A stretch of DNA of 64,000 bases, from the NCBI GenBank assembly GCA_002269645.1, contig NIVC01000884.1, positions 124,001-188,000 on the forward strand, given 5' to 3'. Positions within the stretch are counted from its first letter, which is position 1; each line of letters starts with the position of its first letter. Shown here piece by piece: positions 9,836 through 48,526 of the stretch. The notes under the pieces are model-generated. The model saw nothing but the letters and a program-made list of their open reading frames with translations, was not told where the DNA came from and made no database searches. The translations under genes and the position numbers were made by a program. Source of the DNA: Macrostomum lignano (Eukaryota).

Positions 9836-10318
9836 GATGTGTTGTCAAAACTGGATTGTCATGGATGTGTTGTCAAAAATGGATTGTCATGGATGTGTTG
9901 TCAAAACTGGATTGTCATGGATGTGTTGTCAAAACTGGATTGTCATGGATGTGTTGTCAAAACTGGATTGTCAGGGATGTGTTGTCAAAACTGGATTGTC
10001 ATGGATGTGTTGTCAAAACTGGATTGTCATGGATGTGTTGTCAAAACTGGATTGTCAGGGATGTGTTGTCAAAACTGGATTGTCATGAGTGTTTTATTAA
10101 AACTGGACTGTCAGGGATGTGTTTTTGAAAGTGGATTTTCGTGTTGTCAAAACTGGATTGTCAGGGATGTCTTGTCAAAACTGGATTGTCATGGATGTGT
10201 TGTCAAAACTGGATTGTGATGGATGCGTTGTCAAGACTGGATTGTCATGAGTGTGTTATTAAAACTGGACTGTCAGGGATGTGTTTTTAAAAGTGGATTT
10301 TCGTGTTGTCAAAACTGA
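9836..10318. repeat. 28-bp satellite, block 4 (decaying end)
   Basis: Same unit, degenerating just before the GPCR start codon. Confidence 0.95.
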
Positions 10319-16422: not shown

Positions 16423-16439
16423 CTTAACTATGAGAGTTG

Positions 16440-17110
16440 AGCGTCAGGTGACTGAGTAATTAGGAATGCGATGTCAGGTGAATGACTAATTGGGGTTGGG
16501 GTATCAGGTAAATGACTAATTGGGGTTGGGGTATCAGGTAAATGACTAATTGGGGTTTGCGTATCAGGTAAATGACTAATTGGGGTTGGGGTATCAGGTA
16601 AATGACTAATTAGGGTTTGGGTGTCAGGTGATTGACTAATTAGGGTTTGGGTATCAGGTAAATGACTAATTAGGGTTGGGGTATCAGGTAAATGACTAAT
16701 TGGGGTTGGGGTATCACGTGAATGACTAATTGGGGTTGGGGTATCACGTGAATGACTAATTGGGGTTGGGGTATCAGGTAAATGACTAATTAGGGTTGGG
16801 GTATCAGGTAAATGACTAATTGGGGTTGGGGTGTCAGGTAAATGACTAATTAGGATTTGCGTATCAGGTAAATGACTAATTGGGGTTGGGGTATCAGGTA
16901 AATGACTAATTAGGGTTGGGGTATCAGGTAAATGACTAATTGGGGTTGGGGTATCAGGTAAATGACTAATTAGGGTTTGCGTATCAGGTAAATGACTAAT
17001 TGGGGTTGGGTTATCACGTGAATGACTAATTAGGGTTTGCGTATCAGGTAAATGACTAATTGGGGTTGGGGTATCACGTGAATGACTAATTGGGGTTGGG
17101 GTGTCAGATG
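16440..17110. repeat. 30-bp minisatellite (GTATCAGGTAAATGACTAATTGGGGTTGGG)
   Basis: Tandem units; the HLPDTPTPIS ORF is a repeat translation. Confidence 0.95.
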
Positions 17111-17739
17111 ACTGACTGTGCGGAGCTGGGAAATGAGGCGACATGCGTGCATTATTCATGCCTGTACGTCTTTACGAAGATAAACGCATAAATCTTATGA
17201 TGCTTTTAAATAGCATTTTGAGACGTATGGCCCGAACTCAGCTTCAATGTCGATCTAATATGCTATTTAACCGGTTATTAACACTATTTTTTCCACAAAT
17301 AAAATGATGAGAAATAAATTGCTAAAATTTGGAAGCTGAATATATATTTGAATGCATCTAATTACAATCAAGCACTAACATAAAAGTACTTTTCAATTCG
17401 ATGTAAACTTATTTAAAAAATTTTAAGGTCTTTGAATTTTTGCGTAGGCCGGTTTTCGCATTAGGGTTAAAAAGCCTACCATTGTTCAACCGGTTTCAAC
17501 AACCAGGGTGAGCTGTGACTAATGGCGCAGGGTTAATGTAAGATCCAACACAGACGAATCGCCATCTTCTAAAAAGTGCAGCTCACTCCAAAGTCTGCAG
17601 CCAGCCAATTAAATGCATGGATGACACTTCCTTTCCTCAGAAATGCCATAAATATGTTGCATGGAAACGGTGAGGAGAGCTGCTCACCTCCGAACCTCTG
17701 AAGCAAAACTTCCAGTGGCAGTTCCCCAACAAATTCAGC

Positions 17740-20700
17740 ATGTCTGCTGCCGGATGGCCTTGCTGGATTTTACTGACTGCTCTGCTGCATGCTGGCACCG
17801 TCACGGCTGATGCGACTCCCGGCTGTGCCCCAGGCTCAGGTGAGCTGAGGCTTCTGCGACTTGCTCATTTTTCTCGATTCAAAGCCTCCTAGACTATTGT
17901 AGAGAAAGTGTTGTGAAATTGTGAGTGACAATGGATAAATAATCAGCGGCGCGAGCCATAGACAATCGTTGTCATGCACTGGGACCGCTGATTCTTTGCA
18001 TTGTTTTTCTGTTTGACGATCCTACAGACAATGCATTGTTTGTAGTAATGGATTGTTCTGCATTAAAAATGTGAATAATGATCGTCAAATTGCTAAACAA
18101 TGTCAAATTTCAGTTCTTTCACGTTGTCTCCTTTCTGTCTGCCAAAATACTCGTAGGTTTGGCCATAGAAAACCTCACTTTAACTGGAACATAAAACAGA
18201 AAAACCATATCGGAAAAATAGCGTAGGGCATTATACTTTAACAATTATACTTTTTTGCGATTGAATTCGTCCAAACTGCAAAACCTTTCGTCCACAAATG
18301 CTTTCTTAATGGGAGCTAAATTTAGATTATACCATAGACAACTGTGTTCACGCAAAACGGTTCATCCAGTTTGTAAAACATTTCGTCTAAACCCTACGTC
18401 CAAACAGCTAACAGCTAAACGGAGCGACTTTATTTGATATCACGAGATATTGAACAAAGCAAAAACAGTGTCTCTTGTTAGAATGTTAGTTCAAAATGTC
18501 TTCGTAGTCCAAACAGCGGCCGTAGTAACCCACAGTGTGATTGGTCCATTGCTGGCACTTCTCCTGTGTAATCACGTGCAGTGCAGCTTCGACCTCTCTC
18601 TTCAAAATGTGCATCCGCCAGGCCTCGGTTCATCTTCGACTGTTTTGCCGGGTTCAGAATGGAAGATATGCGTTGCTGTAGCTGTAGTGGTAGCAAAAGC
18701 GAACTGTCAATTGGGTGTTAACTATGGTAGGAACAGTACACTCGGTCTCTAGTCTAGGGGACGAAATGTTTTACAAACTGGATGAACCGTTTTGCGCGAA
18801 CACAGCTGTCTATGGTATGATCTAAATTTAGCTCCCATTAAGAAAGCATTTGTGGACGAAAGGTTTTGCAGTTTGGACGAATTCAATCGCAAAAAAGTAT
18901 AGTTAGACTAGAAAAAGCAGAATTAAAGAAATAAAATATTTTTGCATATAATTCCACGCCCTTTAAAGGGCCGTTTAAGTATACCTTGTGTTAGGCCCTT
19001 AAAAGGACCGTTTTAGAAAACTTAATGTTGGAGCCTCAAAAAGGCCGTTTTAGCATACTTTATGTTGAGCAAAGGTTGGAATGAGGCAACTCCTGCGGGA
19101 GAGACCATTAAAAGATTCTGTATAGTAAATATTAAACATCAGCGTCATTAAACATCCCATCAGCCTCGCAACGCTTCGAGCCGTTCGAGGCCAGCTGTCC
19201 GCCCGCTCCATCGGCCAGCGTCTTGGCTGCTGGTGAAAATCTCTCCATCGAACTGCCAGCGGACAGCCAGACGACCTGCTCGATTCTGTGCGCCATGCGA
19301 GACGCCTGCGGCTACCTGCGTTTCGATTCGCAAGCTGGCGTTTGCAGCCTGTCGAGTCGAGCGCAAGGCATGACGCATCACAAAGCCGGTGAGACATTCC
19401 GGATTGGACACCCTCTGGGTTCATGGACACCCTCTGGATTCATGGACACCCTTTGGGTTCATGGACACCCTCTGGGTTCATGGACACCCTTTGGGTTCAT
19501 GGACACCCTTTGGGTTCATGGACACCCTTTGGGTTCATGGACACCCTTTGGGTTCATGGACACCCTCTGGGTTCATGGACACCCTTTGGGTTCATGGACA
19601 CCCTTTGGGTTCATGGACACCCTCTGGGTTCATGGACACCCTCTGGATTCATGGACACCCTCTGGATTCATGGACACCCTTTGGATTCATGGACACCCTC
19701 TGGATTCATGGACACCCTCTGGATTCATGGACACCGTGTGGCTTCATAAAGCCACATAAGCTGTGGCTTCATAAAGCCACATAAGCTGTGGCTTCATAAG
19801 CTTCTTAAACACCTTCTTGGCTGCATAGACCTTCTAAGTTCAGTTCCACCCACTGGGTCCCACCCTCTGGCTTCATGGACACCCTCTGGCTTCATGGACA
19901 GCCTTCTGGTTTAATGAATATGAATTCGATCATGAACACAACTTTAGATAAATAGGGAGTTCAGTTATATAGATAAGACGCAAGAGCCACTTAAATTTTT
20001 TTAGACATCCATGGGTTATATCAGGCAGGGTCTAGTACGTATGACAAGACTGGTTTGAGTATGACATCCAGAGCCATCATCAGATCACAAACACTTAGGG
20101 CTCAGGGCTTGATTACACCGCTCATTAAATGAATCATTTCTTGATACAGCCGGGAGGCGTTGTGCGCCCATTCCCGCCAACCCCTGGAGACCAGGGGAGC
20201 TGGTGCTGCGCAGGGAGTTCCGGTGGTGCCGGTGTCCGCAGCGCGGTCCCCCCTCGGGAGAATCCAGAAGGTGGATGGTCGCTCGCCCGGTAGCCCTTAG
20301 GTAGCGGACGAGCTGACAAAGATTCTCAGTTTTGGGAATTCAAATTTCCCCATGTGTCCGAAGCCCCCAGTGAATATACCAAAGTGAGTAAAGTGAAAAT
20401 GCAATGATACCCTCCGGTACTGCAAAAAAACTGCAGCTGTATCATCAGTGAGTGAAACTGTGTCTCTCACTGACAGTGAGTCAACATCAACCTCAGTGTT
20501 AGAGCCCCCCCCCCCCTGTGCCGTAACCATGAGAACTGCGGATGTAGTGTGTAAGAATGGCTAAATTTACTTTAAAAAGGTGCAATTTAAGTCAGCTGGA
20601 AAGCTGCAGAAATAATGTTACAATGGTTAAGTTTGCTCACCAAGGCGTCAAATTCCAATAGCTTTGAGTTTGCAGGTCTGTACTCAGACACATGATAGAT

Positions 20701-22316
20701 GGGGCACTTTAAAAACCAAAAAATTATCGCGAATTCTCAAAACCTCACAATAACTTGTTTACGCCTTCACAAGCGGGGATAGCGCACGAACTGGATGGAA
20801 TTTGGGTCAAAGTAGGGATAAACAGTACAAATATATTGGATGCCAGTGAACAGAGTAGCTCGGCAGATTAGCTCGGCAGAGTAGCTCGGCAGAGTAGCTT
20901 GGTAGAGTAGCTTGGTAGAGTAGCTTGGTAGAGTAACTTGGTAGAGTAGCTTGGTAGAGTAACTTGGTAGAGTAACTCGGTAGAGTAGCTCGGCAGAGTA
21001 GCTTGGTAGAGTAGCTTGGTAGAGTAACTTGGTAGAGTAGCTTGGTAGAGTAACTTGGTAGAGTAGCTCGGTAGAGTAGCTCGGTAGAGTAGCTCGGTAG
21101 AGCAGCTTGGTAGAGTAGCTTGGTACAGTAGCTTGGCAGAGTAGCTTGGCAGAGTAGCTCGGTAGAGTAGCTTGGTAGAGCGTTAGGCCTCTATCCTATC
21201 GCTCTGCAGCAGCAATAAACTTTTTCCGAACAGATGCCCGACTGTCTGCCTGTCTCAAAGTGTGCCGAGGTTCGAGGCTGTTCTGCGTCTTTCAGCAGCG
21301 CCTGACCGACTCGGTAAATTTCAGCCGACCCTGGCCGGACTATGTGAGCGGCTTTGGAGATGAGGACAACTTCTGGATTGGTAAGGATTTTGATGGTCGG
21401 ACTTCCATAGGTTTTCTTGAGGTAGTTCTCGCTGTCTCTGATACATATATTACTGTTGTTTTATTACTATGGTCACTTTGGTCACCACAATACCCGACTT
21501 GAAGGTCGGGGGTTCGATTCCCGATCCCACGGGAACAATTTGTGTCCTTGACTAAGACACAAAGGCCTTGAGCAAGACTTTTAACTCTGCATTTATTCAG
21601 CTCACCCAGCTGTAAAATGGGTGTCAGCATTAGCTGGGGTAATTGAGGACCCCCCAGTCCTTGGACTGAACAGCCGTACGCAGCTGCGGCTGAGCTGTCG
21701 GTTGCAAATCTGCTCATAAGGGCAGGTCTAATCAATTATTTCTGCATTATTATTATTTATTACTATAATGGTCACAATATCCTTGTCACAATGTCGATGT
21801 CAAATTAATTTTGATCACATTGCTCTTGTGACACTATCTCAGCCATAGCTCGTATTTCCGCACTGGTTTTCAGGTCTCGAACTGCTCAGCCTGATAACAT
21901 CTCTGTCCAACAGTACTCTAAGAGCCGAACTCTTTGACTGGTCCGACGCCATGTTCTCGGCCGAGTATTTGGGATTCGTCGTGAAGAACGCCAGCACGCA
22001 GTACACAATGGACTATGCCGGATTTCTCAGCGCCAATTCGAACGTCACCGGAGATTCTCTGTCACTCTGCAGAGGCGAAAAGTTCTCAACAATGGACAGG
22101 GACAATGACAATTTCGGCGGATCCTGCAGCCTCATCTATCACGGCGCCGCCGGCTGGTGGTTTCGCGGCTGCTCTAACGTTAACCCGAACGGCTGGATGA
22201 CCTCGGGCCAGGTTGACAACTTTCCCAAGGCCGTGCACTGGTATAGTGTGCATGGCAACAAGAATTCTCTGAAGGCTGTCAGGCTGTTGGTTCAACTGCC
22301 TACAGAGGGACCCTGA
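17740..22316 (+). CDS. Secreted PAN/apple + fibrinogen-C (FReD) lectin-like protein, paralogue 1 (intact), 4 exons
   Basis: Exons 17740-17839 (signal peptide MSAAGWPCWILLTALLHAG), 19164-19388 (PAN-like CSILC..C..F..C.L), 21234-21380 (VFQQR..W.DY..GFG..FWIG) and 21874-22316 (FSTMDRDND, GWWF.GC...NPNG). All introns are phase 1 with GT-AG borders. Confidence 0.88.
18248..18899. mobile_element. Non-autonomous Tc1/mariner-IS630-like element with about 140-bp TIRs
   Basis: 18248-18387 is the reverse complement of about 18760-18899, with TA on both flanks. The minus-strand interior reads LKREVEAALHVITQEKCQQWTNHTVGYYGRCL, resembling DDE_3 transposase C-termini. Confidence 0.7.
19405..19740. repeat. 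19-bp minisatellite (GGACACCCTCTGGGTTCAT)
   Basis: Tandem units in lectin intron 2; same family as 750-1477. Confidence 0.95.
20143..20293. repeat. GC-rich dispersed repeat, copy 1
   Basis: Reverse-complement homologue at 31264-31419. Confidence 0.8.
20850..21180. repeat. 13-bp minisatellite (AGAGTAGCTTGGT)
   Basis: Tandem units. Confidence 0.95.
21490..21735 (+). mobile_element. SINE family B with CORE/Meta-like central domain
   Basis: B box GGTTCGATTCC at about 21511, then CCTTGAGCAAGACTTTTAAC...CTCACCCAGCTGTAAAATGGGT, matching the conserved central domain of CORE/Meta-type SINEs as I recall it. Confidence 0.65.
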
Positions 22317-22555
22317 GCAGGTGGACGCTCGGCTGATGTGCACGGATACAGCTGGCTTAACTTTGAAGTACAAACAACTGAATACGGAAAACTCTATGAA
22401 ATACAACAACAACAAAATTGAATCTAAAATTGAATTCAAAAGTACAATACAGGCAATATATATCCTGCTTAAATAAAGCCTCACAAATTCTAGCATCCCA
22501 GGCGGTCGAAAAATACTTGCTTGCCAGTCATTTTTATTGCACTGTCCAGTTATTC

Positions 22556-24486
<1,931 letters not shown>

Positions 24487-25281
24487 AAGGATGCAGAGAA
24501 GTCAGTATGTTTGAAATTGATGCAACAAAATTGTTTTGAGGATCTGTTTAAAAAATTAAGTCTCAGCGCCGATGTTTATGACATAGACTTTTAGGTTGAA
24601 ATTTCCCATAAAAACAGCTTTTTCTGTCTACCCAGAGATTTTATTCCGGTCGCAAAATGTTTTTAGCTCTGTCCCGAAGTTTGAAAGACAAGCATTGTTT
24701 GCAGTCATTGTTAAGCTACTTGCAAAAATAAAGTTTTTTATGCAAATCTTTTTAGTGCATGGGGACCAACCTAATGCATTCAAAGTCGAAAGCAATCAAA
24801 ATAGGGTTGGGGAAAATGAGGACAAATTTGTTTTGTATGCCGAGTTAGCGATCTGTAACGCCTTAAATGGACGTCCAGGTACATTTTAAAGCACTTGGGT
24901 ATCTTCCTGTAATTCGGGTATCTTTAGGTATCCACATCCAGGCATCTCTATGTATCCAGGTATCTTTAGGTATCCAGGTATCTTTAGGTATCTTTAGGTA
25001 TCTAGGTACCTTTACTGGTGGGTATCCAGGTACATGTGTACCTTTACGCATCCACGTACCTTACAGTATCTAAGACATGTTGTGGCAGTTCGTGTTAGAA
25101 ATACCCTTAAAAAACTGATTTAGTTAAATACAATCAATGTTTCACTTAAGTCTACTACTGGCAGTAGGGTGTAAGAAATTGAAAATCCTGTTGTTCCTCT
25201 GAGACGAGAGTATTTAAGGAGGTAAATTGACGCATTTGCTTCTCATGGGAAGAGCAGTTTAAGAGCACAACTGACCAAGCC

Positions 25282-26062
25282 ATGAAACTCAGCCAGCATC
25301 TTGCAGCTCTGGCTATTCTACTCAACCTGGCTCACCTTGGTTCGGCCATTCAACCCATCACGGAATCTGATGCTAGTCCTAGCAACGTAAGTTTCATCGA
25401 TTTCAACCTGACGACTATTTTTTAGAACCTTAGACCTTCCACACCCCAGTCAACAGTGTCAGACATAAAGATCTACATCTAAATCTAAATCGTTTTCGTA
25501 GAATATGGATGTTGAATAGTCCGCAGTGAGCTTGTCTTTAGTTCCCCCATGTACTTACGAAATACTCGTAATTGAAGACTTCCCAAGCCAGTAGAGCATC
25601 TGATTTATTTCACAGCGGGCCTTTACTTACAAATGACACGGTTAAAGAACTTTTCAAAAGCCATGCTTCCTTAACTGCTGTGGGGTTCTGCTGCTTGTCA
25701 CTCGTCCAATTCATCCGCTTTAGCCGAGCAATCCTCAGGTTGACGGTGCCGCAAAACTTCTGACCCGGATGAAGTCAGTTGCACTGCGACTCGGCGATGC
25801 TGAACGCAAGATGCACCTGGCTGCGGAAGCTCTCCACAGAGTCACTTCCGGTGACAAGCTAAAAGTGACGCCGCCGAAGCCACAACTCCAGGAGCCGCTA
25901 AAGAGGCAGCACAACCGTTTGTACACGCAGCCAAGCCGGCTTGAACTGTCCCGCCAGCTGGACGCCGAAGTCAGCGCAGCCAAGCTGCCTGGCGGGGACG
26001 CGGCCTGTCTGTTCCATCCGATCTCCTGCTACGGCAGGCCCATGGAGCTGCATGCGAACTAA
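25282..26062 (+). CDS. Secreted neuropeptide precursor with allatostatin-C/somatostatin-like C-terminal peptide, 2 exons
   Basis: Exon 1 25282-25386 encodes a signal peptide (MKLSQHLAALAILLNLAHLGSA) and ends at a GTAAG donor, phase 0. Exon 2 runs from 25724 (or 25739) to 26062. It has a KR site and the C-terminal CLFHPISCY-G-R. Confidence 0.78.
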
Positions 26063-26329
26063 GCGGAACTGCAGGGGTTGCCCTGCTCACAATTAAGATT
26101 CAACTGTAGTGGAAGTACTTGAGTCTCGATAAATCTAAATAAAGTTTTCACTGACTCGCTCGTAAATTAGCGAGATTGGATATTTTAGTTAGTTTATTAA
26201 CCATAAACAGCCTCAATCGTTAATTAATCCACACACAATTCAAAAAAGCATAAAAACTTGCGGGCTTGTCGGTTATCACCGACACAGAGTAAATGAGGAG
26301 TAGCATTTCTAGAGAGAGAAAATATATAA

Positions 26330-27242
26330 GCACTCAGACAGCAGAGTTCAAGCACTGAGACAGGAGAGCTCAGGCACTGAGACAGGAGAGCTCAGGCACT
26401 GAGACATCAGAGCTCAGGCACTGAGACATCAGAGCTCAGGCACTGAGACAGCAGAGCTCAGGCACTGAGACATCAAAGCTCAGGCACTGAGACATCAGAG
26501 CTCAGGCACTGAGACAGCAGAGCTCAGGCACTGAGATAGCAGAGCTCAGGCTCTGAGATAGCAGAGCTCAGGCTCTGAGATAGCAGAGCTCAGGCACTGA
26601 GACAGGAGAGCTCAGGCACTGAGACATCAAAGCTCAGGCACTGAGACATCAGAGCTCAGGCACTGAGACAGCAGAGCTCAGGCTCTGAGATAGCAGAGCT
26701 CAGGCTCTGAGATAGCAGAGCTCAGGCACTGAGACAGGAGAGCTCAGGCACTGAGACATCAAAGCTCAGGCACTGAGACATCAGAGCTCAGGCACTGAGA
26801 CATCAGAGCTCAGGCACTGAGACATCAGAGCTTAGGCACTGAGATAGCAGAGCTCAGGCTCTGAGATAGCAGAGCTCAGGCTCTGAGACAGGAGAGCTCA
26901 GGCACTGAGACAGGAGAGCTCAGGCACTGAGATAGCAGAGCTCAGGCTCTGAGATAGCAGAGCTCAGGCTCTGAGACAGGAGAGCTCAGGCACTGAGACA
27001 TCAGAGCTCAGGCACTGAGACAGGAGAGCTCAGGCACTGAGACAGGAGAGCTCATGCACTGAGACAGGAGAGCTCAGGCACTGAGACAGGAGAGCTCAGG
27101 CACTGAGACAGGAGAGCTCATGCACTGAGACAGGAGAGCTCAGGCACTGAGACATCAGGGCTCAGGCACTGAGACATCAGAGCTCAGGCACTGAGACATC
27201 AGAGCTCAGGCACTGAGATAGCAGAGCTCAGGCTCTCAGACA
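26330..27242. repeat. 22-bp minisatellite (CTCAGGCACTGAGACAGGAGAG)
   Basis: Tandem units with an internal CTCAG-nnn-CTGAG palindrome. Confidence 0.95.
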
Positions 27243-27694
27243 GGACAGCTGTTGTCTCACTGACTACCTCACCAGCTCATCTCACCCAGAGATTCTCTAT
27301 CTGGCGGATGTGAGAATTTCACCCGATTAGAAATTTGGCACATTACCAAAAATGGATTTCTGAAATAGCTTAAAAAGGAAAAAATCCCTCCAAAGCAAAC
27401 GGCTTTTTGTGGAGCTTGGGAAGATGGCTTATCCTTAAGAATTTAAGGCTCAAATATTGCGAAATCGCTTTACTGGAATCTTGTTACTTCTTTAAAGATC
27501 TGTGTAAATGGAGAAAATTGAATTTTCGAAAAAATATTTAATCCCGAATTTGGTTTAAACAATTTCCAAGTCCATGCTTTCTCAAGTATATAAGTGTCTT
27601 TCATTGGTCCGCCTGTCTTAGTAGCCTGGAGCTGCCCTTCTTTGTATGCACCTGTGATAGAAACCTGTGAGAATATACTGCTTAACATAGGGAG

Positions 27695-28155
27695 AAGGTT
27701 GAGGGAGGGAGAGATAGAGAGGGGGACGATAGAGAGAGGGAAAGGATAGAGAGAGGGAGAGGATAGAGAGAGGGAGAGGATAGAGAGGGAGAGAGGATAG
27801 AGAGAGGGAGAGGATAGAGAGGGAGAGAGGATAGAGAGAGGGAGAGGATAGAGAGGGAGAGGATAGAGAGGGAGAGAGGATAGAGAGGGAGAGGATAGAG
27901 AGGGAGAGGATAGAGAGGGAGAGGATAGAGAGGGAGAGAGGATAGAGAGGGAGAGAGGATAGAGAGAGAGAGACGATAGAGAGAGGGAGACGATAGAGAG
28001 AGGGAGACGATAGAGAGAGAGAGACGATAGAGAGAGGGAGACGATAGAGAGAGGGAGTGGACAGAGAGAGGGAGAGGATAGAGAGAGGGAGAGGATAGAG
28101 AGGGAGAGAGGATAGAGAGGGAGAGAGGATAGAGAGAGGGAGAGGATAGAGAGAG
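27695..28155. repeat. GA-rich (GAGAGGATAGAGAG) low-complexity array, continuing at 30372-30472
   Basis: The same repeat lies on both sides of the 28156-30371 insertion. Confidence 0.9.
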
Positions 28156-30371
28156 TGATGTAACCACGCTCTGGTCGCGGGATAGGGCATGGGAACTTTT
28201 TCGAAAGTGCCTCCTATCCCGTGCACCCTCTGCACAGAGCTGTCAAGACTCGGCCAGGTCTCCGACCGGGCCTGGAGACTCCCGCTCTGCTGCACCCCTC
28301 CTGCTGCCTTGGTCCCGTCTCCCCTGCCGCCACACCTGCCTTTCCGGAGCCCCCTACCCCTTTCTGTACCTCCCCCTCTACCCTATCTCTTCTGTTTTCC
28401 GCCCTATTCTTCCTGTACTTTCCCTATCTCCCCTCTTTTTGTCTCCCTCTGCACTCTTTTCCTGCGCTGCCCCCCCCCTCTTTCTCTGTGTCTACTTACA
28501 GTATGTTGTGTGCTCACCGTCTCCCCATACCCTCTCAAACTCCCAAACGGTGACGCAAGTCGTGTGACCCCCTCTCCCCCTCGGTGACTCATCGATGACT
28601 CATCCCCCCTCTTGCGCAACCTTTTCTCACGCCATTGTTCTCCTCCCCAAATTTCTCATGCGACACCCACCCCACCTCCGCTTCTATTGTTCTCGTTTTT
28701 GTTTCTTTTGTTCTCTCGAACCCCACCAATTATCACATTTTCTCCGATTTTCTCTTTCTTTTGTTCTCGTTTTCGCACCTAATTATCACCTTTTCCCCAA
28801 TGTTTACTTTTCCATTGTTCTCAGTTCTCCCCAATTATCCCCGTTTTCCAATTCCTTTGTTCTCGACCCCAGCCCTATTGTTCTCAATGTTTGCTTGCGC
28901 AATACTTTCGCGACCACCCGCTGCGCCAATTATCCCCCCACCCCACCTCCGGATTGCGCAATTTCCCGATTTCTCATGTTGCTATGCCGGTCTCATGCTT
29001 CTCATCATGACTCATTCTGACGTCATTCTGCCGGCAGCCAATCAGAGAGAGGGAGCCATGGTAACGACCTTGAGGAGGCGGCTGTGAGGTCTATAAAAGG
29101 AAGCGATTTCGGCATGAGAATCCTCAGACTCTTCCTCTCCTCGTCCTTCTTTGGACTTGCTGTCAGATTGAGTTCTGACCCATTCATCTCTTAGACGAAT
29201 CCCTGCCGGTCCGCGGTCTGTTACCGCCAAGTTATCCTTAGCTCCCCAAGTGAGCTCGCCTATCGGCCAGCGGTCTGATACCGCCCAGCATCATCAGCAT
29301 CGCTTGATCTACATCAGCGCCTCGTCGCTCCAGCGCATCGCCGCTTCACTGTCTGCCTGACTGCAGCCTACAGCCGCCCTCGGTCACTCCGCCTCTCTCT
29401 CTCTCTGTGCAGCTGCCGGTAAGTTCCTGTTACTAATTTGTGCTCTAATTGCCTTTGCTTATCCGGGGTTTGCCTATTTTCCATTGTCTGATTAGAGAGC
29501 TGAGCCAATTGTGATACCGTAAATTTTTGCTGTATTTTACTCAATAGTGAAGCCGCCTAATTGCCTGATTATTTGCCTAAGGTCCTAATTATTAACTATT
29601 AACTAACCTCATCATTATTCAATCTTTCACCATCATTTAACTCATGGCTTGCTAAGCCTTTCTCCCGGGGTGGCAAAGCATAAGGAAGTTTGGGTAAGCT
29701 AATGGCCTCTCCCCGTGCAAAGCCCGCCTGTGTGAGTGCGTGCGGCGGGTTCGGGAGTGCGTGCAGTGGAGGGTGATTAGCGAGTTTTGGCACAGAATGG
29801 CAGTAGGAAGGTTGCAACCCCATGCTAACGCATCCCTTCGCCCTGAGCAATCTAAACTAGAGACAGTACATGTTCGCCTCATACTACTCTTAGTAATCAA
29901 AGTCGCAAGTCAGCCTCGCTCACAGCCACAAAGGATCCCCTGCTGAGAAATCCTCCAGGATTGAGCCCAGAGTTCCCGATCATGCCCCAAGCAGAGTCCC
30001 TGTACTCGGCTGCATGCGTCTCCCCTGTTAGCCTAAATCCCCTGGTAACCAATCCAGGCGGGGCTCTAGCCTCGAGAGGTCTGGTAGAAAGATCCAGGTG
30101 CGCCAGGTCACATAGAGTGGTGGCAGCCACTCGGTCATACCATGACCGAGTGACCAACTATTGCACCTTGGCTACAGGTGGGGTCCATGTGGGTCCTTGG
30201 CCCTCTGGTCACGAAGCGCTACCAAAGCTACTAATCATGTGGGCGGGACAGTCTGGTGCTGGAGGTCCGTCAGGTCATTGCCCGGTCATAGGCAGCCTAC
30301 GGTCATTGCCCCCTCTAGCCAAGCGTTCGTCTCTCAATAGGAGCGGACAGGCGACAAGGGCGGTTACATCA
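28156..30371 (+). mobile_element. Probable 2.2-kb solo LTR (Gypsy-type) inserted in a GA repeat
   Basis: Termini TGATGTAACC and GGTTACATCA form a perfect 10-bp inverted repeat, with AGAG on both flanks (possible 4-bp TSD). Internal CCAAT and TATA boxes; no convincing ORF. Confidence 0.6.
29008..29098 (+). promoter_or_regulatory. Pol II promoter module in the putative LTR
   Basis: TGACTCA 29008-29014, TGACGTCA 29018-29025, CCAAT 29038-29042, CCATGGTAAC about 29056-29065, TATAAAA 29092-29098. Confidence 0.6.
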
Positions 30372-31263
30372 AGAGGGAGAGGATATAGAGGGAGTGGACA
30401 GAGAGAGGGAGAGGATAGAGAGAGGGAGAGGGTAGAGTGAGGGTGTGGACAGAGAGAGGGAGAGGATAGAGATCGCATGAGATATCTATAAACGAATATA
30501 TAAAGCGAATAAATAAAAAACGAAGAAAAAAGAAACGAAGAATCGAGACAGATACCAGGAGAGTGAATCGAGCCAATCGTCCCTTTGACTCAAACGCCTG
30601 ATTCACGCCTACGTAAAACAAGACTTTAAGCATACTTTATACTTTGAGGTGGCATTAAAGCGGAATGCAACACTGGCTACTACAAGTAGTCAGGGCTTTT
30701 GTTTGCATATTCTTATTGAACCAAAACTCATTGACAGACAAAAACTTGCGGGCAAGCAGCGCAATCTGCAAGCTACTTCTATGAAGTAATGCAGCCACCA
30801 CGAGCGATTCATGGCACCAAATTGGTGTTTTACCTGGTAATGTGATTTGGACCAGGGGTCCAGGGTAGTTCAGTGCACATGTAACTCCTGGGCTCGTCTC
30901 CTGTGCACGAAAAGTTCTATAGAGGGATCCGACAGCGAAAGCGCCGCTCTGATTGCATCGCTTCAATCTTGGGACAAAGGACTTAGTCGGCCTTATTGTC
31001 GGATTAGTCGGACTTAGCCTTATTGAAGCGGCACCCAGAGGAAAGTCACAGGCTCGTGCTAATGAATAGCTTCTAAAACAACTTACCTGTCTTCTGTCGG
31101 CTGAACTCTACAACAGCAAAATTCAACATGCAGTGTTCATCATCAGAAAGTATTCGATTCACTTTTCGAAGCACTACGCCGTTAGCTCCGTTGGCGATAC
31201 ATTAACGTGGACCTCTGACGTTTTCAGGCCCGAGAATCTCTGCCAGCTCGTCCACTACGTCCA

Positions 31264-31419
31264 CTACCGGGCGAGCGACCATCCACCTGCTGGACTCTCC
31301 GGAGGGGGACCGCGCTGCGGACGCCGGCTCCACCGGATCTCCCGCGCGACACCGCAGCACCAGCTGCCCGTGGTCTCCAGGGGTTGGCGGAATGGGCGCC
31401 AACACCTCCCCGCTGTATC
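31264..31419. repeat. GC-rich dispersed repeat, copy 2
   Basis: Reverse complement of 20143-20293 with substitutions and a loop indel. Confidence 0.8.
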
Positions 31420-32124
31420 CGGACGCCCGGAACCCCCGAACCGTCGATGAAAGGCACCGAAGTTCAATGCTAACAAGCAGCAACTGGCCTATAAGCGGCG
31501 TTTCTTTGATGCTTGAAAAGCCGTAGACAAATAATCGGAGGCTTTTGTGAGCCATTGATTTGCTATAGAGCGCCCACCCCATTTTTCCGGCTCCGTACGT
31601 CAGCCGGCTTTCTCTCTCTAACTCTCGCCCCCTTATCTGTACTCGTAGTAAGCAAAGTGTACATTTACGACCACCACCCCACGCAATGCAGTAGCCGACT
31701 AAATATTAAATAAATAACATCGTCTCGCCCACTGTGGCTTTCGTACTTCTTCGTGCAACTGCCAAATCATGCATTAAACCCTTACAGCTTTGAATGCAGA
31801 GCTTCATCAGAGCGACGGGGGAGACTATGAAAGACGAATGATGAGAGAATTCAGGCGCTGCAGCAACGGATGGCATCCACTATTGTTATCATTTTGTAAT
31901 TCATACCGTGTATAAATAGGCTTTCGGATTCGGCTGCCGTCCGCTGCTGGCTAAGTGTAGCTCCCGGCAAGCCATGACTGAATTAAAGCAACTTTTACCA
32001 TTTGTAATCCTGACGTTAATGTTAGCGGTCAATGCTGATGGACGTGAGCAATTACCTTTTAAATTTTTTTGCGACCAACCAGAAACGCCATTCTCATCGC
32101 ACACTCACTGAACTCAAATTTTAG

Positions 32125-33680
32125 TGGCTTTAGAGTTCTAACTCAAATCGAGTTCACCAAACCTTGTCACCGAGTTCGCCCAGGTGACCAGATCGGTTGC
32201 CAGCAGCAAGATTCACTGCGCCGCTTTGTGCAGCAGCCGCAGCTACTGTCGGACATTCAGCTACTCACCGGACAGCTCCGAGTGCCGGATGTCAAACCAG
32301 AACGGAGGCCTCGCCAGCTTTGGTCTACCTGAGTACAGCCTCGGTCATAGGAGGCGCGCAAGCGAAGCAAGTGAGCAGCTAATTAACTTGGAAGAGAACA
32401 ATTCATCAGTTTTCAGGACTGTCAACATGGATCGATCTGTATGCAGATATAACAGCAACAGTGTTAATTTTAAGATGGGTCTCGAGCGCACAAACGCACA
32501 CAAAGACGAACATATCTGTTCTGACTTTTCAGCTTCAGGTGGTAAATACACTCAGTGCATTTTTAGTGGCAGCTGGCTGTGTGCACCCTGGCGCATTTTA
32601 TGCGACATTGTCACACAACCGGCGAGAGGCATTTCTGCCCATTCCACCGACTCCCCTGAGCAGGCACACAAGCGCGCGGATACGTAAGCAGTCATACGCA
32701 CAGGCACACACTCACACAGGAGTGTACAGCGGCCCTAACTTTATTTATAGTTAGGCATGTACACTTCACTGTGTCTTGAGGGGGGTGGTGGCCCTCAAGG
32801 GCGTTAATTTCACGAGCAGAGCCAAGCCGAGATTCCAATTCAGTCCCAAATTAATGTGACTGCACTGGGAATCGAGCCTGGGCCAACAGTAAGCCTCACG
32901 AGCGCAAACGTCCTGGAGAGTGATAAAAGTATCCAAAAAAGAGAAAATCCAACCATTCAATGGACACACATAACACCTCCACAGACACCGGATCTCAGTG
33001 CAAGCGTAACATAGTGACCATGACTGACGGTCGACAGTTCTGCCCCATCCAGCAGCGGGTGAGCGACACCAGCTTCGAGCAGTCGTGGAGTGCGTACGAG
33101 ACCGGTTTGGGCGACGATTTAAACTACTTGGTGAGTCGTCCATTTTAAGCTTCAACTCTTAGAGTATTGACATTGTTTCGTTTACTAATAAAAAGTGATG
33201 GAATTAATTGTGATTTTTACCAATCGGCAGGCCTAGAAGCGATTCACCAGCTCAGCTCGGCTGTCGCCAACGGAGTCACTCTTCTCGTCCAAGTTGTGAC
33301 CTGGGAGGACGACGAGCTGCAGTATCAGGAGTACTCGAACTTTCTCGTCCAAAACGCCAGCACAAACTACTCGTACGTCATGACTGTCGGGCCCGTTGAT
33401 TCGGCGAAATCGAACGCTAAGGAAAGTAAACTAAGCCTTAGCAACGGAGGTATGTTCTCAACTACGGATCGGGATAACGATATGCTTACAGCCTCCTGTT
33501 CGAATAAATATCACGGAAGAAGCGGCTGGTGGTTCCGAGGCTGCACCCTGTTCAATCCGAACGGAGTGTACTCTCGCTGTACCGGCGGTTGGTCACGGGG
33601 AGCACAGGTGGATGAGCTGGAAACGCTCCAGCGTTTGGAAGTCGCTGAAGGCGACGCGTCTGCTGCTTCTGATCGCCTGA
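32125..33680 (+). pseudogene. PAN-FReD paralogue 2, pseudogene
   Basis: Exons 32125-32370, 32985-33130 and 33231-33680. TAA at 32139-32141 where paralogue 3 has CTA. Exon 3 is 146 nt versus 150 nt (YWIG becomes YL). A further frameshift lies before the terminal WMSWK..SLKATRLLL. First exon not identified. Confidence 0.8.
32575..32885 (-). mobile_element. SINE family A copy in intron of paralogue 2
   Basis: Homologous to 12311-12635; retains the B-box part of the head. Confidence 0.8.
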
Positions 33681-36630
33681 TTCGGGAAATTGAACGATGA
33701 TACTAATTGACTGATCAACTATTGTTAAATACACTGGGAGACAAATAAAGCGGCTCATGACACTTGTGATGTCCAATGTCTACTACTGATACAGAATGCC
33801 GCTGCAATGTAGCAAAAACAAAAGATTTTAATTTCGATTTTGGATACTTGCTGTGATCGATGCTTATTATTGGTGTGTTTTTATTCAAATTTCTTCCTTG
33901 AACAAAAAGCTCAAATGACAAACCTTGAGATCGTAATTGCTTGATTGTTCGAGTTTGAAGCAGTCTTAAGCTCGACAAGCGTGGACAACGGAAGTTTCTA
34001 AGACAGGAGGAAGCTACACTAGATTTTCTTAGAAATGAACTGTACGCTGGTAAGCAACATATATATTTGTCGTATCGCTGCAGTGCAGTTAGTGTACTCT
34101 TGAGAAATCTGGAGGGGGGTCTTTCTCGAAAGCGACTTCCGGTGTGCCATAGACGTAAGTTAGGGAGGAAGCACTTATAGTTTGCTCGAAAGGCTCGCAA
34201 CTTGACGCGACGTACGATCGATCGCAACTTTACGCAAAGGACAGTTTCTCGAAAAGAGAGTAAGTCTATGGTCCTGCTTAATATCGATCGTAAATCTGCG
34301 CCTGTTCGAGACCAAGCGAAAGTAGACATGAGCCCCCAACTTCATTCTCATCAGAGACCATCGCGCATCTAACCGATCCACTCGGGGCCGATGAGCTGCT
34401 CAGACACAAACAGACCGTTCGGATTGGAACGGGCGCATGCGTTGAACCACCAGCCGCCGCTGCCGTGGTAGGCGTTCGAACAGACAGCCGCAAACATGTC
34501 GTTGTCCTGATCCGTGGTAGAAAACATCATGCCGTTCTGGTAGTCAAGATGGTTAAAATCAATATTCGAACTGTTAGAAACGATGGGTCCAACTGTCATT
34601 GTGTAATTCGAGTGGAGATCCCGAACGCTGAAGTTGGAGTACACCTGGTAGAGCGACTCGTTGCGCCATGTGACCAGTTGAACTAGCAGAGCAACTCCGT
34701 TAGCATCGCACGAAGTAAGCCGGTGTATGGCTTGCAGACCTGCGGGAGTTGCGGCCCGTGACTTTCCAAAACAGGCACGACACGTGTTCCGTGGGAAATA
34801 TGGCAGGCATGGATAGGTAAATCAGACTTGCACTTAAAAATCGAGCTAACTTGCTTGACAGCTTTCGGTTTTCGCCTCAAACTTCATGGGCGTGACAGTT
34901 AATAGCAGTTATCGATTGGCTTGAAAAAACTTGATTCCGAAATTATAAATGAGTGATATTAGGCATTGAGTGCTATGCGTGTAAAATCGAATGCGAATAT
35001 GCATTAAAACTACTGTTAGTAGTTTCCGTTTGAGAGAATATTAGTTAAGGTTAGATAAGGGGTTAGCATGATTCAGTAAGAATAAGGAAGCAGTTGGTTA
35101 GGAGGCCCTAAATTCTTGCCCCTAGTTTTGTCTCGCATAGAGACGCCTAACCGCAGTACCACTGTGACACTTGTCTCTGCCTGGCTGAAAGCTTGTAATG
35201 AGTTAGTAGGCTGGGTTGGAGGGTAATAGTCGATCAGGAAGGGCTGTGGGTAGCTGTATGGGAAGGCAGGCCTAACCTGTTCCAGTTGATGCTCTGGCGG
35301 AGTGTCCTCCCTCCCTCGGAGTGTCCTCCCTCCCTCGGGGTGTCCTCTGAGCGAACAGCCAGCGACTCTATTAAAGCTGGAGTGTGCCAGAACCAGGACT
35401 GAGTCTGACCAGGACGGGGCCGTTGGCACGGCCTAATAGAAATGGCGGGTTGGCGAAGCAAAGGGTGAAATAGTCCCGGCGATTAGCCCTCCTGCCGCTT
35501 CAAAGATAAGAGACTGTCAGGCAAGAGTACCCGGGGTTTAGTGAGGGGGGGAGGCTCCTCGAGGGTAGCCACGGCCGTGGGGGCGGTCAAATGACCGGTT
35601 TTTGGCTCTTCTAACCCGGAGAAGGCACGGGCTTCCCTGATTGGTTCACTCAACCCCCTCTGGCCCCGGGTAGGTTTTGATTTGAGCTTGGAGTAGGCTT
35701 AACGCCCCGAAGGCAGGGGGTAGGGCCCGCCCTTTGCCCGACTGGTGTTGCCTGCTCAGCTTGTTGGCCACAGTCACTCTCACTCTAGCTTAGAAACCTT
35801 GTGTACATTCGTACACTCCCAATCTGGAACCCAAATTATCACGTGTGGCGTAAGAGCCTGCTCAATGGCTGAGGCGCCAGATTTACTTATTTTAGTTAGT
35901 TAGTTAGAGGCCCCAAAAGTCTCGCCTCTGCTAATTCTGAAACTGTAAAACATTTTGCTACTCAAAATCGATATTATTATACGCTAAATAAAAATTTTAG
36001 AAAAGACAGAAGGGAGAGAGGAGAGAAAATAGGGGAGGGGAGGAAAACGGAGAGAACTGAGAAGAGAGCTGAGAAGAGACACAAACCTTGAGCGGGCCGG
36101 ATTGCTATTGTGAAGTTTCAAAGGACCCGATCAGGGCCGGGTAGAGAGGCTTCTGCCGACCCCTGCCCTAGACCGTTCGATCACATGCTGTAATACAGCA
36201 TTTTGAAGAGTCAGAGAGCCGAGCTCACCAATCCAGTAGTTGATATCGTCGCCGAAGCCAGACTCGTAGACAATCCATGGCTGCTGAAAGTCGGCGTCGC
36301 TCACCCGCTGCTGCATGGGGCAGAAGTGGCGACCGTCAGTCATTGTCACGATGGTACGCTTGCACGGAGACCCGAAGGCTGTTTGCGTAAAGTAATCAAT
36401 AAATTAAAACTATTTGCAGCATTTCAATCGAACGGAACTGGTGAATGATGTTGTTCTTCATTTTGTAGTTAGCCAGCGTTCTTCAAAGAATATAAAACAG
36501 CTTTTTCCTAATACAAACGTTTATTCAAGTCCGATTAAACCGTTAAAAATGTTAAAAATGAGATTTGATTTAAAGGCTGGGCCTGTTCGAGTGACTTCTG
36601 TCACCTCACCTGCCCGTTCTTTCAGGCCGG

Positions 36631-37722
36631 TGTTATGGTTTAGGATCTCCGGGGGTCCGGTCAGTTTAGGGTGTCCGGGGCGGAGACCCTAAACGGTTTA
36701 GGATTTCCCCTGGAGACTTCTAACGGTTATGGGTCTCCGGGGTAGGAGATCTGAAACCGTTTAAGGGTCTCCGGGGCATTTTCAGGTCTCCGCACCCGGA
36801 GATCTTAAACCAGTTTCTGATCTCCCCCCAGGAGACTCTAAACCAGTTTCAGCTCTCCGTCAGGGCCGCAAAAACATAGTCCTGGTTTAGGATCTCCGGT
36901 TTCCGATCTCCCCCCCCCCATTTGTGTAAAACCAATGGTCATGGTATTGAACGCGTACATGTATAAGAAGTGGAAAGGCATTTTTATCATCAACGTAGCA
37001 TTAGTTTTATATGTATATGCTCGCACAACTGTGTATTTAAATGGAAAACTGTTTACTGTTAAAGTAATGAAGTAAATGTCCGCTTAGTGAAAAACCGGTG
37101 ATGCACTTTCAGCCGGTGCTTGGAGGAAGCATCTCTTGAGGTGTTTCCCATTGACACACCTGGTTAGTCCTCCTAGCCTGTACACGTTTTGACCAAGACA
37201 CCTGGTCACGATGTAGACTTGCTGACTCCAAGTGTATCGCATCTTACCACCCTTCCGATCGTCCCTGCGAAGATTGCGAAGCCTAACTCTGTCCCCTCGC
37301 TTCAGATCCTGAACCCCAGCTGCTCCCACGGTGTGACCAGCTCGCACCTGTCACAAGACTCGACCACTGCCTTGGCAATCGGTGTGACGGGGAGGTCAGC
37401 ATAGTATCGTGCAGTAAAAAGGCTCACTGTGCTGTTGACACCCACGTGACTTCCTTGCGAGTGAAGTCTCCAAAATGTGCAAAGCCTATTGAAAGTTACG
37501 CAAGACTGCTCACACTTTGGGGTGCCAATCTCGATGTACACAGAAGTAGCTATAATTTTCATATAGAAAAGAACCGCGGAGATCCTAACACGGCGGAGAC
37601 CTGTAACTCTATCTTATGTTATGGTTTCCGATCTCCGTGTGGGCGATCTTAAAATGACACAATTTTCAGTTTGTGATCTCCGGGCCGGAGACCCTAAAAC
37701 GCGGAGATCCTAAACTCTAACA
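36631..37722 (-). mobile_element. Ginger-type (Gypsy-integrase-related) DNA transposon, internally deleted
   Basis: Termini TGTTATGGTTTAGGATCTCC and GGAGATCCTAAACTCTAACA. TSD CCGG at 36627-36630 and 37723-37726. The minus strand encodes an HHCC zinc finger (LHSQGSHVG..T..ARYY..CDRC) next to a GPY/F-like tail (GDRVRLRNLRRDDRKGGKM..W..VY...VNGKHLK); the DDE core is absent. Confidence 0.85.
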
Positions 37723-38264
37723 CCGGAGCTGTAGGCCGGATGGCCATCAGTGTTAAGAACTCCGGGTTCCTCGTTCGACATCCGACACTCGGAACTGCTC
37801 GGCGAGTAGCTGAATGTCAGACAGTCGCTACGGCTGCTGCTCAAAGCGGCGCAGTGAATCTTGCTGCTGGCAACCGATCTCGCCACCTTAGCAAACTCGG
37901 AGACAGACTTCAGCGAATTCGATTCGAGTAGGAACTGACGAATCACTGCAGATGGAATTCGATAGATTGGTGGACACCCTCTTACTTAGGTGGGTGCCCC
38001 AACCCCCTGTCTGCTAGGCTGGTGGACGCCAAGTCCTAAAGATGTCAAAATTTGAGCTTCTGTCCTTCGACGAGCTTCTTTCGTCCAGTTTTTGTGAAGG
38101 TGTTTAGGGGGGGGGGGGCGCTGCCCCCCTGACCCCCCTGCGTACGCCACTGCCCGTTGCGACTTTCCATGCAAAATTTCGAATTCCGCATGAATCTATT
38201 TCAATATGGGATTCGAATGGTCACTATATCGTAATTGTTCATGAGCAAGTCGGGGCATGCAAAT

Positions 38265-38468
38265 GCACCCTGACTCACTTTATGCGACATTGTCACACAA
38301 CCGGCGAGATGCATTGCTGCCGGCCCCATTCCAACGACTCCCCTGAGCAGGCACACAACCGCGCAGATACGTACGCAGTCATGTGACTGCACTTTGGAAT
38401 CGAGCCTGGGCCGCTGGCGCATCATAACGCCGAGCCCGACTACATGTACATGTACTAGACTACGGCCT
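38265..38468 (-). mobile_element. SINE family A copy, internally deleted, with tRNA head
   Basis: The reverse complement reads AGGCCGTAG...GGCGTTATGATGCGCCAGCGGCCCAGGCTCGATTCC, joined to the 3' body. Confidence 0.75.
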
Positions 38469-39150
38469 CTTTATATTTTTGGTCCTTCTTTGAATTCGGA
38501 AATAAAACTGAGTTGCAGAAAAACATCTTATTAATTCAATAAAGAAATACTAGAGGCTCTAAACATTTTCGGGTCTTTCGTCAAATAATTTTTTACTGAG
38601 TTAGGGTGGCGGCCACCACATTGAATGATTAACACGGTATAATTAAAAGCAAAGACACCAGTTGGAAAGCAGTACCGTTGTTGTTTACTGACGCCTACAC
38701 GTGCGTAGTAACAAAACCCGTGAAAAAAGCAGTTTTGGCACATTAGAATAGCCACGATCAGGATGTGAGCTCAGCTTACCCATTGCCGAGTCAACACTGG
38801 GGCAGCAGGTGTTAGTCCAGATCAAGCACAGCACAGCACAGAAGGACTGCAGACAGCAAAGGTTTGTCGCCATGCTGACTGCTCCTGAGACTTTTTGCTG
38901 AGCCAGCAGAAACAAGATGGAGAAACAAAGACGATGAGATTACCATGGCCTTATTGGTCTCAGCTCAACTCTCCAATCAGATTGTTCAATGCATGGACAC
39001 CTGAAGTAGGAGGAAGCTGAACTCGACTGTGTTAAATCATCATTGATATATCTTGTGGCGTCGCCATGGATTTTCTGTTGGGGGAACAAAGCCAAGAATT
39101 CTACATGTACCTTATTTTCAGAGTTGTTGTTGTTAGCGCTCATTCATTTT

Positions 39151-48334: not shown

Positions 48335-48365
<31 letters not shown>

Positions 48366-48366
48366 G

Positions 48367-48399
<33 letters not shown>

Positions 48400-48459
48400 C
48401 TAACTAACTAACTAGCTAACTAACTAACTAACTAACTATCTAACTAACTAACTAACTAG

Positions 48460-48526
<67 letters not shown>

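Follow-up and report, generated by a model that had tools for sequence, protein, structure and literature searches.

The window analyzed here is a 64,000-nucleotide stretch of the Macrostomum lignano genome (GenBank assembly GCA_002269645.1, contig NIVC01000884.1, positions 124,001 to 188,000 of the forward strand); it is eukaryotic in character and rich in repeats, and its coordinates are counted below from its first nucleotide. The three fibrinogen-type genes that it contains very probably belong to a genuine gene family, expanded in M. lignano, whose products, predicted to be secreted, combine a PAN module with a fibrinogen-related domain (FReD). One copy is intact and two are decayed, and the tandem array is in all probability subject to birth-and-death turnover. 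A six-frame scan of the window found exactly three fibrinogen-type coding regions, all within 17740-38873, and Pfam confirmed both Fibrinogen_C and PAN_1 on single open reading frame (ORF) pieces. Each gene comprises four exons, which encode a signal peptide, the PAN module, a short FReD entry segment, and the remaining FReD, respectively, and all introns are in phase 1; the exon models agree in this with the initial annotation, which had described three paralogues of the same plan. Copies 2 and 3 are arranged tail to tail with their 3' ends approximately 690 bp apart, and only their exons can be aligned, in inverted orientation, at 74-84% nucleotide identity, as expected from the convergent inverted pair that had been proposed. 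Copy 1 shares approximately 35% protein identity with copies 2 and 3.

Copy 1 is located at 17740-22316 on the plus strand. All of its junctions are GT-AG and in phase 1, and its exons join into an uninterrupted ORF of 304 aa, so that the copy described earlier as intact is indeed open over all four exons. The N-terminus is hydrophobic, all residues that are invariant in the family are present, and the whole protein gave a Fibrinogen_C match of 127.9 bits (curated cutoff, 22 bits), in which residues 125-296 corresponded to profile positions 43-217 of 221. No database proteins came close to copy 1 other than three M. lignano UniProt entries, with 97-99% identity over the FReD part. The features of copy 1 are given below, with splice junctions marked by a slash.

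17740-17839, plus strand: exon 1, start codon and hydrophobic signal-like peptide MSAAGWPCWILLTALLHAGTVTA..., phase-1 donor G/GTGAGC
19164-19388, plus strand: exon 2, 225 nt, phase 1-1, PAN/apple core with four Cys (C72, C76, C82, C94)
21234-21380, plus strand: exon 3, 147 nt, phase 1-1, FReD entry exon DARLSACLKVCRGSRLFCVFQQR...NFWIG, with the beta-hairpin and QQR strand
21874-22316, plus strand: exon 4, remaining FReD (B and P subdomains) to the stop codon, with the DRDND calcium motif, the C242/C257 pair, NPNG, and the C-terminal strand SLKAVRLLVQL
19405-21180, no strand assigned: tandem arrays that fill intron 2, their repeat units measuring 19 bp (19405-19747) and 13 bp (20852-21180)

Of the three M. 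lignano models deposited for copy 1, P0001 (A0A1I8I6E3) has the hairpin segment in a different frame (DNARCLLSQSVPRFELFCVFQQR) relative to window positions 21234-21300, which would fit a 1-bp difference in another assembly or in another copy in the genome; the remaining two share the frame of the window, and nothing is on record about the genomic context of P0001. Intron 1 of copy 1 holds a MITE-like pair of 145-bp inverted repeats (18243-18387 and 18760-18904) that are 97% identical and approximately 370 bp apart. A (TTAG)n microsatellite of 1.9 kb (22558-24486) starts approximately 240 bp 3' of the copy-1 stop codon, and a shorter inverted array is found 24 kb downstream (48307-48620). Directly upstream of the copy-1 start is a 30-bp tandem array (16474-17107), which reads as a repetitive ORF of 243 aa (16428-17159, minus strand; PDTPTPISHL...) that is almost certainly non-coding. 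Farther upstream, an ORF of 252 aa with a RING finger (zf-C3HC4, E 8e-8; 14565-15323, minus strand) probably belongs to an adjacent gene as one of its exons.

Copies 2 and 3 are both decayed. The three lesions formerly ascribed to one of the copies were all located in copy 2: an in-frame TAA at 32139, a frame-breaking exon-3 donor (NYL/GTGAGT versus NYWIG/GT in relatives), and a frameshift in exon 4, past which the C-terminal SLKATRLLLL of the family is out of frame. P0158 (A0A1I8FVR7), a UniProt model from an older M. lignano assembly that is approximately 93% identical to copy 2, shows no lesion at the first two of these sites (Lys in place of TAA; NYWIG/LEAIH) and ends at NPNG, just before the third; copy 2 is therefore best seen as the degraded duplicate of a gene of which an intact version exists elsewhere. 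A retroelement remnant does exist in copy 3, which had been called transposon-hit, but it is weak and confined to intron 2; the true lesions of this copy are a Cys-to-Ser replacement in the PAN module and a premature TAG. All splice phases of copy 3 are kept, and its last FReD strand is restored in no frame downstream of the TAG, where more stops follow. Fibrinogen_C matches on the exon pieces of copies 2 and 3 scored 62.2, 51.0, and 18.5 bits. The features of the two copies are as follows.

31974-32043, plus strand: copy 2 exon 1, MTELKQLLPFVILTLMLAVNADG, phase-1 donor C/GTGAGC, confirmed by P0158, in which MTELKQILPFVILTLMLAVNADG joins the PAN exon
32125-32370, plus strand: copy 2 exon 2, PAN module (PAN_1, 28.4 bits), in-frame TAA at 32139-32141 where P0158 has Lys
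32985-33130, plus strand: copy 2 exon 3, ...CKRNIVTMTDGRQFCPIQQR...NYL, 146 nt, donor moved to phase 0 and clashing with the phase-1 acceptor of exon 4
33231-33680, plus strand: copy 2 exon 4, FReD B and P subdomains, frameshift after NPNG near 33554, with the family C-terminus ...SLKATRLLLLIA and its stop codon in the other frame
38873-38780, minus strand: copy 3 exon 1, MATNLCCLQSFCAVLCLIWTNTC..., phase-1 donor G/GTAAGC
37945-37724, minus strand: copy 3 exon 2, PAN module (PAN_1, 22.2 bits), second core Cys, otherwise invariant, replaced by Ser (AGC at 37841-37839)
37084-37562, minus strand: retroelement integrase-like remnant in copy 3 intron 2, touching no exon (Integrase_H2C2, E 1.4e-3, below cutoff)
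36378-36229, minus strand: copy 3 exon 3, ...CKRTIVTMTDGRHFCPMQQR...NYWIG, intact, phase 1-1
34739-34369, minus strand: copy 3 exon 4, FReD B and P subdomains, premature TAG at 34371-34369, approximately 22 codons short of the family C-terminus

The donor of the copy-2 PAN exon was first set at G/GTCATAGG; this position was ruled out by the intact P0158, which shows that the exon is 24 nt longer and extends to GCAA/GTGAGC. The equivalent donor in copy 3 (G/GTGTTAG) is weak, and an extension there would run into a TAG; the site may be an additional lesion of copy 3.

Pairwise comparison of copies 2 and 3 (Nei-Gojobori, 227 codons) gave a dN of 0.26, a dS of 0.93, and a dN/dS of 0.28, values which indicate that the duplication is old, that divergence took place mostly under constraint, and that inactivation came later. 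The alignments thus support a history in which copies 2 and 3 arose as tail-to-tail duplicates, were long constrained, and were inactivated afterwards, as birth-and-death evolution predicts. Together with the presence of one intact and two decayed copies and of an intact counterpart of copy 2, this agrees with the birth-and-death cluster postulated in the initial annotation. Short dispersed repeats with 84-88% identity were also noted between the introns or flanks of the three copies (32582-32695 and 38264-38382; 20143-20327 and 31232-31419). One of these pairs has the same orientation although its host genes are inverted, which indicates independent insertion and not inheritance with the duplication.

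The same gene plan was found at other M. lignano loci. The GenBank BOX15 models were built from a genome-guided RNA-seq transcriptome (PMC5730564), and among them PAA73083/PAA66279, PAA71533, and PAA69192 carry a PAN module with the same shortened FReD as the window genes; a signal peptide is visible in the sequences of PAA73083, PAA66279, and PAA71533. Mapping of PAA73083 and PAA71533 to their own loci yielded the same four exons with phase-1 junctions and introns of only 80-110 bp, and the models P0080 and P0158 join copy-2/3-type exons exactly as predicted. Because the GenBank models are derived from RNA-seq, the transcripts of these relatives do join the signal, PAN, and FReD exons. The initial annotation had proposed to give up the architecture if transcripts left the PAN and FReD exons unjoined, and the transcript-based models show the opposite. 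Further tandem copies or fragments lie at other PAN-FReD loci of this species (L001:8091-9098, L001:13592-13759, and L002:18228-18491), and these second copies and isolated PAN or FReD fragments indicate that tandem duplication and decay recur across the family.

Relatives were collected by an exhaustive HMMER scan of 1.84 billion representatives, which returned 7884 FReD hits, and the best 150 of these were inspected. Matches within this set that extended into the PAN region or were recognized by a hidden Markov model (HMM) of the family PAN module were almost all from M. lignano. The M. lignano members are P0009/P0153 (PAA73083/PAA66279), P0154/P0047 (PAA71533), P0022 (PAA69192), P0024, the P0080 cluster, P0158, P0018/P0033, P0029, and P0004, the last being a fused model of three tandem units in the order FReD, PAN-FReD, PAN-FReD. 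The family proteins are small, with a length of approximately 270-300 aa. UniProt/GenBank already lists 13 or more M. lignano representatives from the 50%-identity library, comprising both PAN+FReD proteins and FReD-only fragments, under the name 'Fibrinogen C-terminal domain-containing protein', and the domain combination has been recorded in molluscs (PMC7588048), so that the earlier description of the family as undescribed was overstated. In the literature searched, the gene identifiers Mlig012238, Mlig031549, and Mlig031505 occurred in no full text, no expression data for the family were found (a Macrostomum adhesion paper names fibrinogen only in passing), no paper was found that names both 'fibrinogen-related' and 'PAN domain', and little was found on fibrinogen-related proteins in free-living flatworms.

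Identification of the PAN module was based on PAN_1 (curated cutoff, 21.4 bits), which was exceeded by copy 2 (28.4 bits), copy 3 (22.2 bits), P0080 (28.2 bits), P0158 (28.7 bits), and P0004 (25.2 bits), and on a family profile. Four PAN cysteines (C72, C76, C82, and C94 in copy 1) are invariant in seven aligned family members, and copy 3 has lost one of them. The family PAN profile, which was built without copy 1, matched PAN modules only when compared with the PDB (MIC4, E 3e-4; plasminogen, E 1e-3; HGF, E 7e-3), and its hhalign comparison with copy 1 exon 2 gave an E-value of 1.8e-4 with all four Cys aligned. In the AlphaFold2 (AF2) model of copy 1, the PAN core is a strand-helix-strand-strand unit at residues 61-97 (strand 61-65, helix 69-78, strands 84-88 and 93-97). 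No conserved flanking pair that could form the outer, first-to-last apple disulfide was found in the family alignment, and the module is read as a minimal PAN core that would lack this bond. The four core cysteines are predicted to form two disulfides that link the C-x3-C of the helix to the two strand Cys.

The FReD of the family is shortened at its N-terminus. In all M. lignano PAN-FReD proteins, alignment to the Pfam profile begins at position 28-54 of 221, versus 2-30 in canonical hits, and in PAA73083 and PAA71533 it begins at about position 40, as in the window genes. The absence of the usual N-terminal segment, which had been reported for the window copies, therefore extends across the family with the same exons, phases, and Pfam start, and the alignments mark it as a family property, not a gene-model error. 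The best solved relative was ficolin-2 (E 4e-26), in which WTVFQRR at chain residue 48 aligned with FCVFQQR of copy 1, and 47 ficolin-2 residues precede this point. The distance from the last PAN Cys to the QQR strand is approximately 25-35 residues in the family, whereas P0088, a canonical PAN-FReD protein, has approximately 70. The AF2 model of copy 1 (pLDDT 81.5, pTM 0.75) consists of the PAN core, a poorly ordered linker, a hairpin (116-120 and 123-131), and a confidently modelled FReD, with pLDDT >90 over most of residues 121-300. Foldseek comparison of this model recovered the fold of the B and P subdomains in ficolins, ANGPTL2, MFAP4, and tenascin. Its closest-fitting superpositions, on ficolin-2, MFAP4, and ANGPTL2, had E-values of ~1e-18 to 1e-19 and 1.4-2.4 Å over 177-195 columns of domains with 213-219 residues, and left the N-terminal ~20-40 residues of the solved FReDs unmatched. 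The helix and strand that begin subdomain A in a complete domain, and the disulfide of its DC...VyCDM segment, were not recovered, and the canonical cysteines are absent.

The initial annotation had further described a short C-x(10-11)-FC motif ahead of the QQR strand. The motif is present, but ten residues separate its cysteines in copy 1 (C-x10-C) and thirteen in copies 2 and 3 (C-x13-C). An alignment of VVTTTDGRQFCPIQQR with VYCDMVTSGGGWTVFQRR placed the C..FC motif against the canonical VyCDM...GGWT hairpin, which indicates that it is best read as a degenerate remnant of this hairpin and probably not as a new element. As judged from the model, the part that is truly missing comprises the first helix and first strand of subdomain A together with its canonical first disulfide (~25-40 residues). 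The two hairpin cysteines are both present in copies 1-3, P0022, P0154, P0080/P0155, and P0158, and both absent in P0009, P0153, P0018, and P0004. This both-or-neither distribution fits a disulfide pair, and the proposed bond would then be a feature of a subfamily and not of the family as a whole. A hidden exon encoding the missing N-terminus was ruled out, since tblastn with family members found no coding piece in the introns and the introns of the expressed relatives are only approximately 100 bp long.

Fibrinogen-related proteins are recurrent raw material of invertebrate recognition repertoires, as in snail FREPs, mosquito FREPs, ficolins, and tachylectins, and M. lignano is accessible to transgenesis, RNA interference, and in situ hybridization, so that function in this family is directly testable. 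For Biomphalaria FREP1, Lottia, and Crassostrea, the literature describes PAN/Apple modules in combination with a fibrinogen (FBG) domain (PMC7588048). Outside Macrostomum, a PAN module followed by a complete FReD was found in Physella acuta XP_059152687 (P0103) and in one eukaryotic metagenome protein among the best 150 of the 7884 FReD hits. The architecture class is thus known from molluscs, and the Macrostomum family represents a variation on an invertebrate lectin type that is already known. Like the Macrostomum proteins, the molluscan ones (Biomphalaria glabrata FREP1, some Lottia gigantea FReDs, and Physella acuta) are secreted and spiralian and carry the PAN/apple module N-terminal to the FReD (PMC7588048), and the Physella PAN modules are weakly recognized by the Macrostomum family PAN HMM. 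Their FReD is complete, however: the best Pfam stretch of P0103 starts from profile position 30 and includes the canonical C...VMCD...GGGWT, whereas the Macrostomum FReD starts from approximately 40. The molluscan proteins are also larger, with two PAN-FReD units in Physella and an additional immunoglobulin superfamily (IgSF) domain in FREP1, whereas the Macrostomum proteins are single-unit and approximately 285 aa long.

Snail FREPs, which consist of IgSF domains, an interceding region, and an FBG domain, had been named as the parallel of the window genes. The comparison is apt in architecture, in that an N-terminal recognition module precedes a C-terminal FBG domain, and both are lineage-specific tandem families of secreted FReD proteins with pseudogenized members; it fails in that the Macrostomum family has neither the IgSF domain nor the coiled-coil interceding region, nor a collagen region. 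Immune function has been shown for snail FREPs and is a candidate role in the Macrostomum family; signs of somatic diversification, for which no dedicated search was made, were not seen. Pfam found no Ig-type domain in copy 1, P0153, P0154, or P0158; collagen repeats were likewise missing from its matches, and the sequence shows no Gly-X-Y run. Ficolins, tachylectin-5A, and FIBCD1 were the best matches in both sequence and structure (for ficolin-2, a Foldseek superposition of 1.4 Å over 177 columns), and DxDxD and the P-domain disulfide are conserved between them and the Macrostomum proteins; unlike the latter, ficolins have a collagen/coiled-coil stalk and a complete subdomain A N-terminus with its disulfide. 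The ficolin pocket His (CH..NLNG) is replaced by Ser, Ala, Thr, Tyr, or Cys in the Macrostomum family, and NLNG by NPNG; copy 1 reads GCSNVNPNGWM where ficolin-2 reads NCHTSNLNGRY. The PAN modules of plasminogen, HGF, and the apicomplexan micronemal lectins MIC4 and SML-2 share with the Macrostomum module the four-Cys core C-x3-C...C...C and the predicted strand-helix-strand-strand order; the Macrostomum module is minimal (~40-45 residues), lacks a conserved outer apple disulfide, and in several members falls below the Pfam threshold. Another small disulfide-rich module fused to a FReD was seen in the Ciona intestinalis 'ficolin-1-A-like' proteins P0159, P0160, and P0166, in which Trefoil (PF00088) lies upstream of FBG. 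What the locus records is a family expanded in Macrostomum and built on a fixed modular plan of four exons and phase-1 introns, with a FReD that apparently lacks the first part of subdomain A. This shortening is a natural experiment on which portions of the fold a FReD can do without; the locus adds to the catalogues of comparative immunology and domain evolution and leaves the overall picture unchanged.

As to function, the products would be secreted, and the P subdomain of the FReD would bind a ligand with the help of calcium, the DRDND or DQDND motif and C...GWW..C being present in copies 1-3 and most relatives. The PAN module may provide a second carbohydrate- or protein-binding surface, or may pack onto the FReD at the place that the lost N-terminal segment would otherwise occupy. 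Going by family precedent, our guess is that extracellular recognition of glycans, in innate defence or in a mucus or surface coat, would be the most likely role, and a pattern-recognition role is likewise inferred. Several observations weigh against a working, Macrostomum-specific family of PAN-FReD lectins. The PAN module of copy 1 is below the PAN_1 cutoff (17.4 bits for the exon ORF and 14.7 bits for the whole protein), as are those of P0009 and P0154 (20.4 bits each), and the isolated PAN model gave no significant Foldseek E-value (all >0.5), the hits of highest probability and lowest rmsd being plasminogen PAp, HGF N domain, SML-2, and MIC4 (1.4-2.0 Å over 41-48 columns). No full four-exon transcript or protein model was found for copy 1, only the FReD-only partial models P0001-P0003, so that expression and splicing of copy 1 itself are putative. 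The restriction to Macrostomum is provisional, as it is drawn from the best 150 hits, and errors of long-read assembly might in principle account for the frameshift-type lesions, though they are a less likely source of the two nonsense substitutions. The calcium motif is lost in P0154 (DAGSN) and degraded in P0024, no member has the acetyl-pocket His after the second P-domain Cys, and the NGxY Tyr varies, being kept by some; ficolin-like sugar binding can therefore not be assumed. Neither a coiled-coil nor a collagen oligomerization region was found, which implies a lower avidity than that of a classical pattern-recognition lectin.

These points leave room for other explanations. It is very improbable that the truncated FReD is an artefact of annotation or alignment, with a complete subdomain A in an unnoticed exon or in the region called PAN. 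Divergent ends are often clipped in Pfam local alignments, and the BLASTP match of P0009 to a canonical PAN-FReD protein reaches weakly into its GIYSITIPG...VYCDM region; against this, the transcript-derived models have just four exons, with too few residues between the last PAN Cys and the QQR strand to match P0088, the introns hold no further coding piece, the PAN profile matches PAN modules alone in the PDB, and the same N-terminal residues are left unmatched by structure comparison. That all three window copies are non-functional, copy 1 being open but silent or recently dead and the working members lying at other loci, is a less remote prospect, though still rather unlikely. Transcriptome-derived models exist at other loci and none turned up for copy 1, whose 90% cluster consists of three partial UniProt models from an older assembly, one of them frame-shifted; its introns, at 1.3-1.8 kb, are also swollen by tandem arrays and the MITE-like inverted repeat, versus approximately 100 bp in expressed relatives. 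Yet copy 1 retains an uninterrupted frame of 304 codons over four exons, consensus GT-AG sites with matching phases, and every family-invariant residue, and the missing model could be explained by the GenBank annotation of M. lignano itself, from which transcripts overlapping repeat annotations were deliberately excluded (PMC5730564).

The more ambitious proposal, in which the PAN module of macrostomid flatworms replaces the lost N-terminal half of FReD subdomain A to form a composite globule, one subfamily gained a new hairpin disulfide (C-x(9-13)-C), and the whole was amplified to serve as a lineage-specific, rapidly turning-over recognition repertoire for microbes or the environment, an independent flatworm counterpart of the FREPs, is unlikely to hold in full. 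A serious rival to any immune or pattern-recognition role, plausible if short of probable, is a non-immune one in which the secreted protein has a structural or reproductive task (in mucus or a surface coat, a gland secretion, seminal fluid, or matrix), with the FReD acting as a protein-binding module as in angiopoietin-like proteins, tenascins, and MFAP4. ANGPTL2/6, tenascin-R/C, and MFAP4 are as strong as ficolins among the structural neighbours, the acetyl-pocket His is missing throughout the family, and there is no region for collagen or coiled-coil oligomerization. PAN modules of HGF and plasminogen, both of which are among the structures hit by the PAN profile, bind protein and heparin. 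On the other side, a lineage-specific tandem expansion with pseudogenes would be more typical of defence or environment-facing families, and most members keep the calcium motif and the P-domain disulfide.

Other elements of the window lie outside the three genes. An LTR/Pao-type retroelement ORF of 1242 aa (3157-6885, plus strand) with DUF1759 (gag-like) and RVT_1 matches is flanked on both sides by arrays of one 28-bp tandem repeat (1860-2782, 7907-8443, 8791-9489, and 9836-10299). A 42-bp satellite at 50450-54390 comprises approximately 94 copies with 95% identity and gives rise to spurious ORFs of >1300 aa on both strands, and an ORF with a leucine-rich-repeat (LRR_6) match was found at 46668-47117 on the minus strand.

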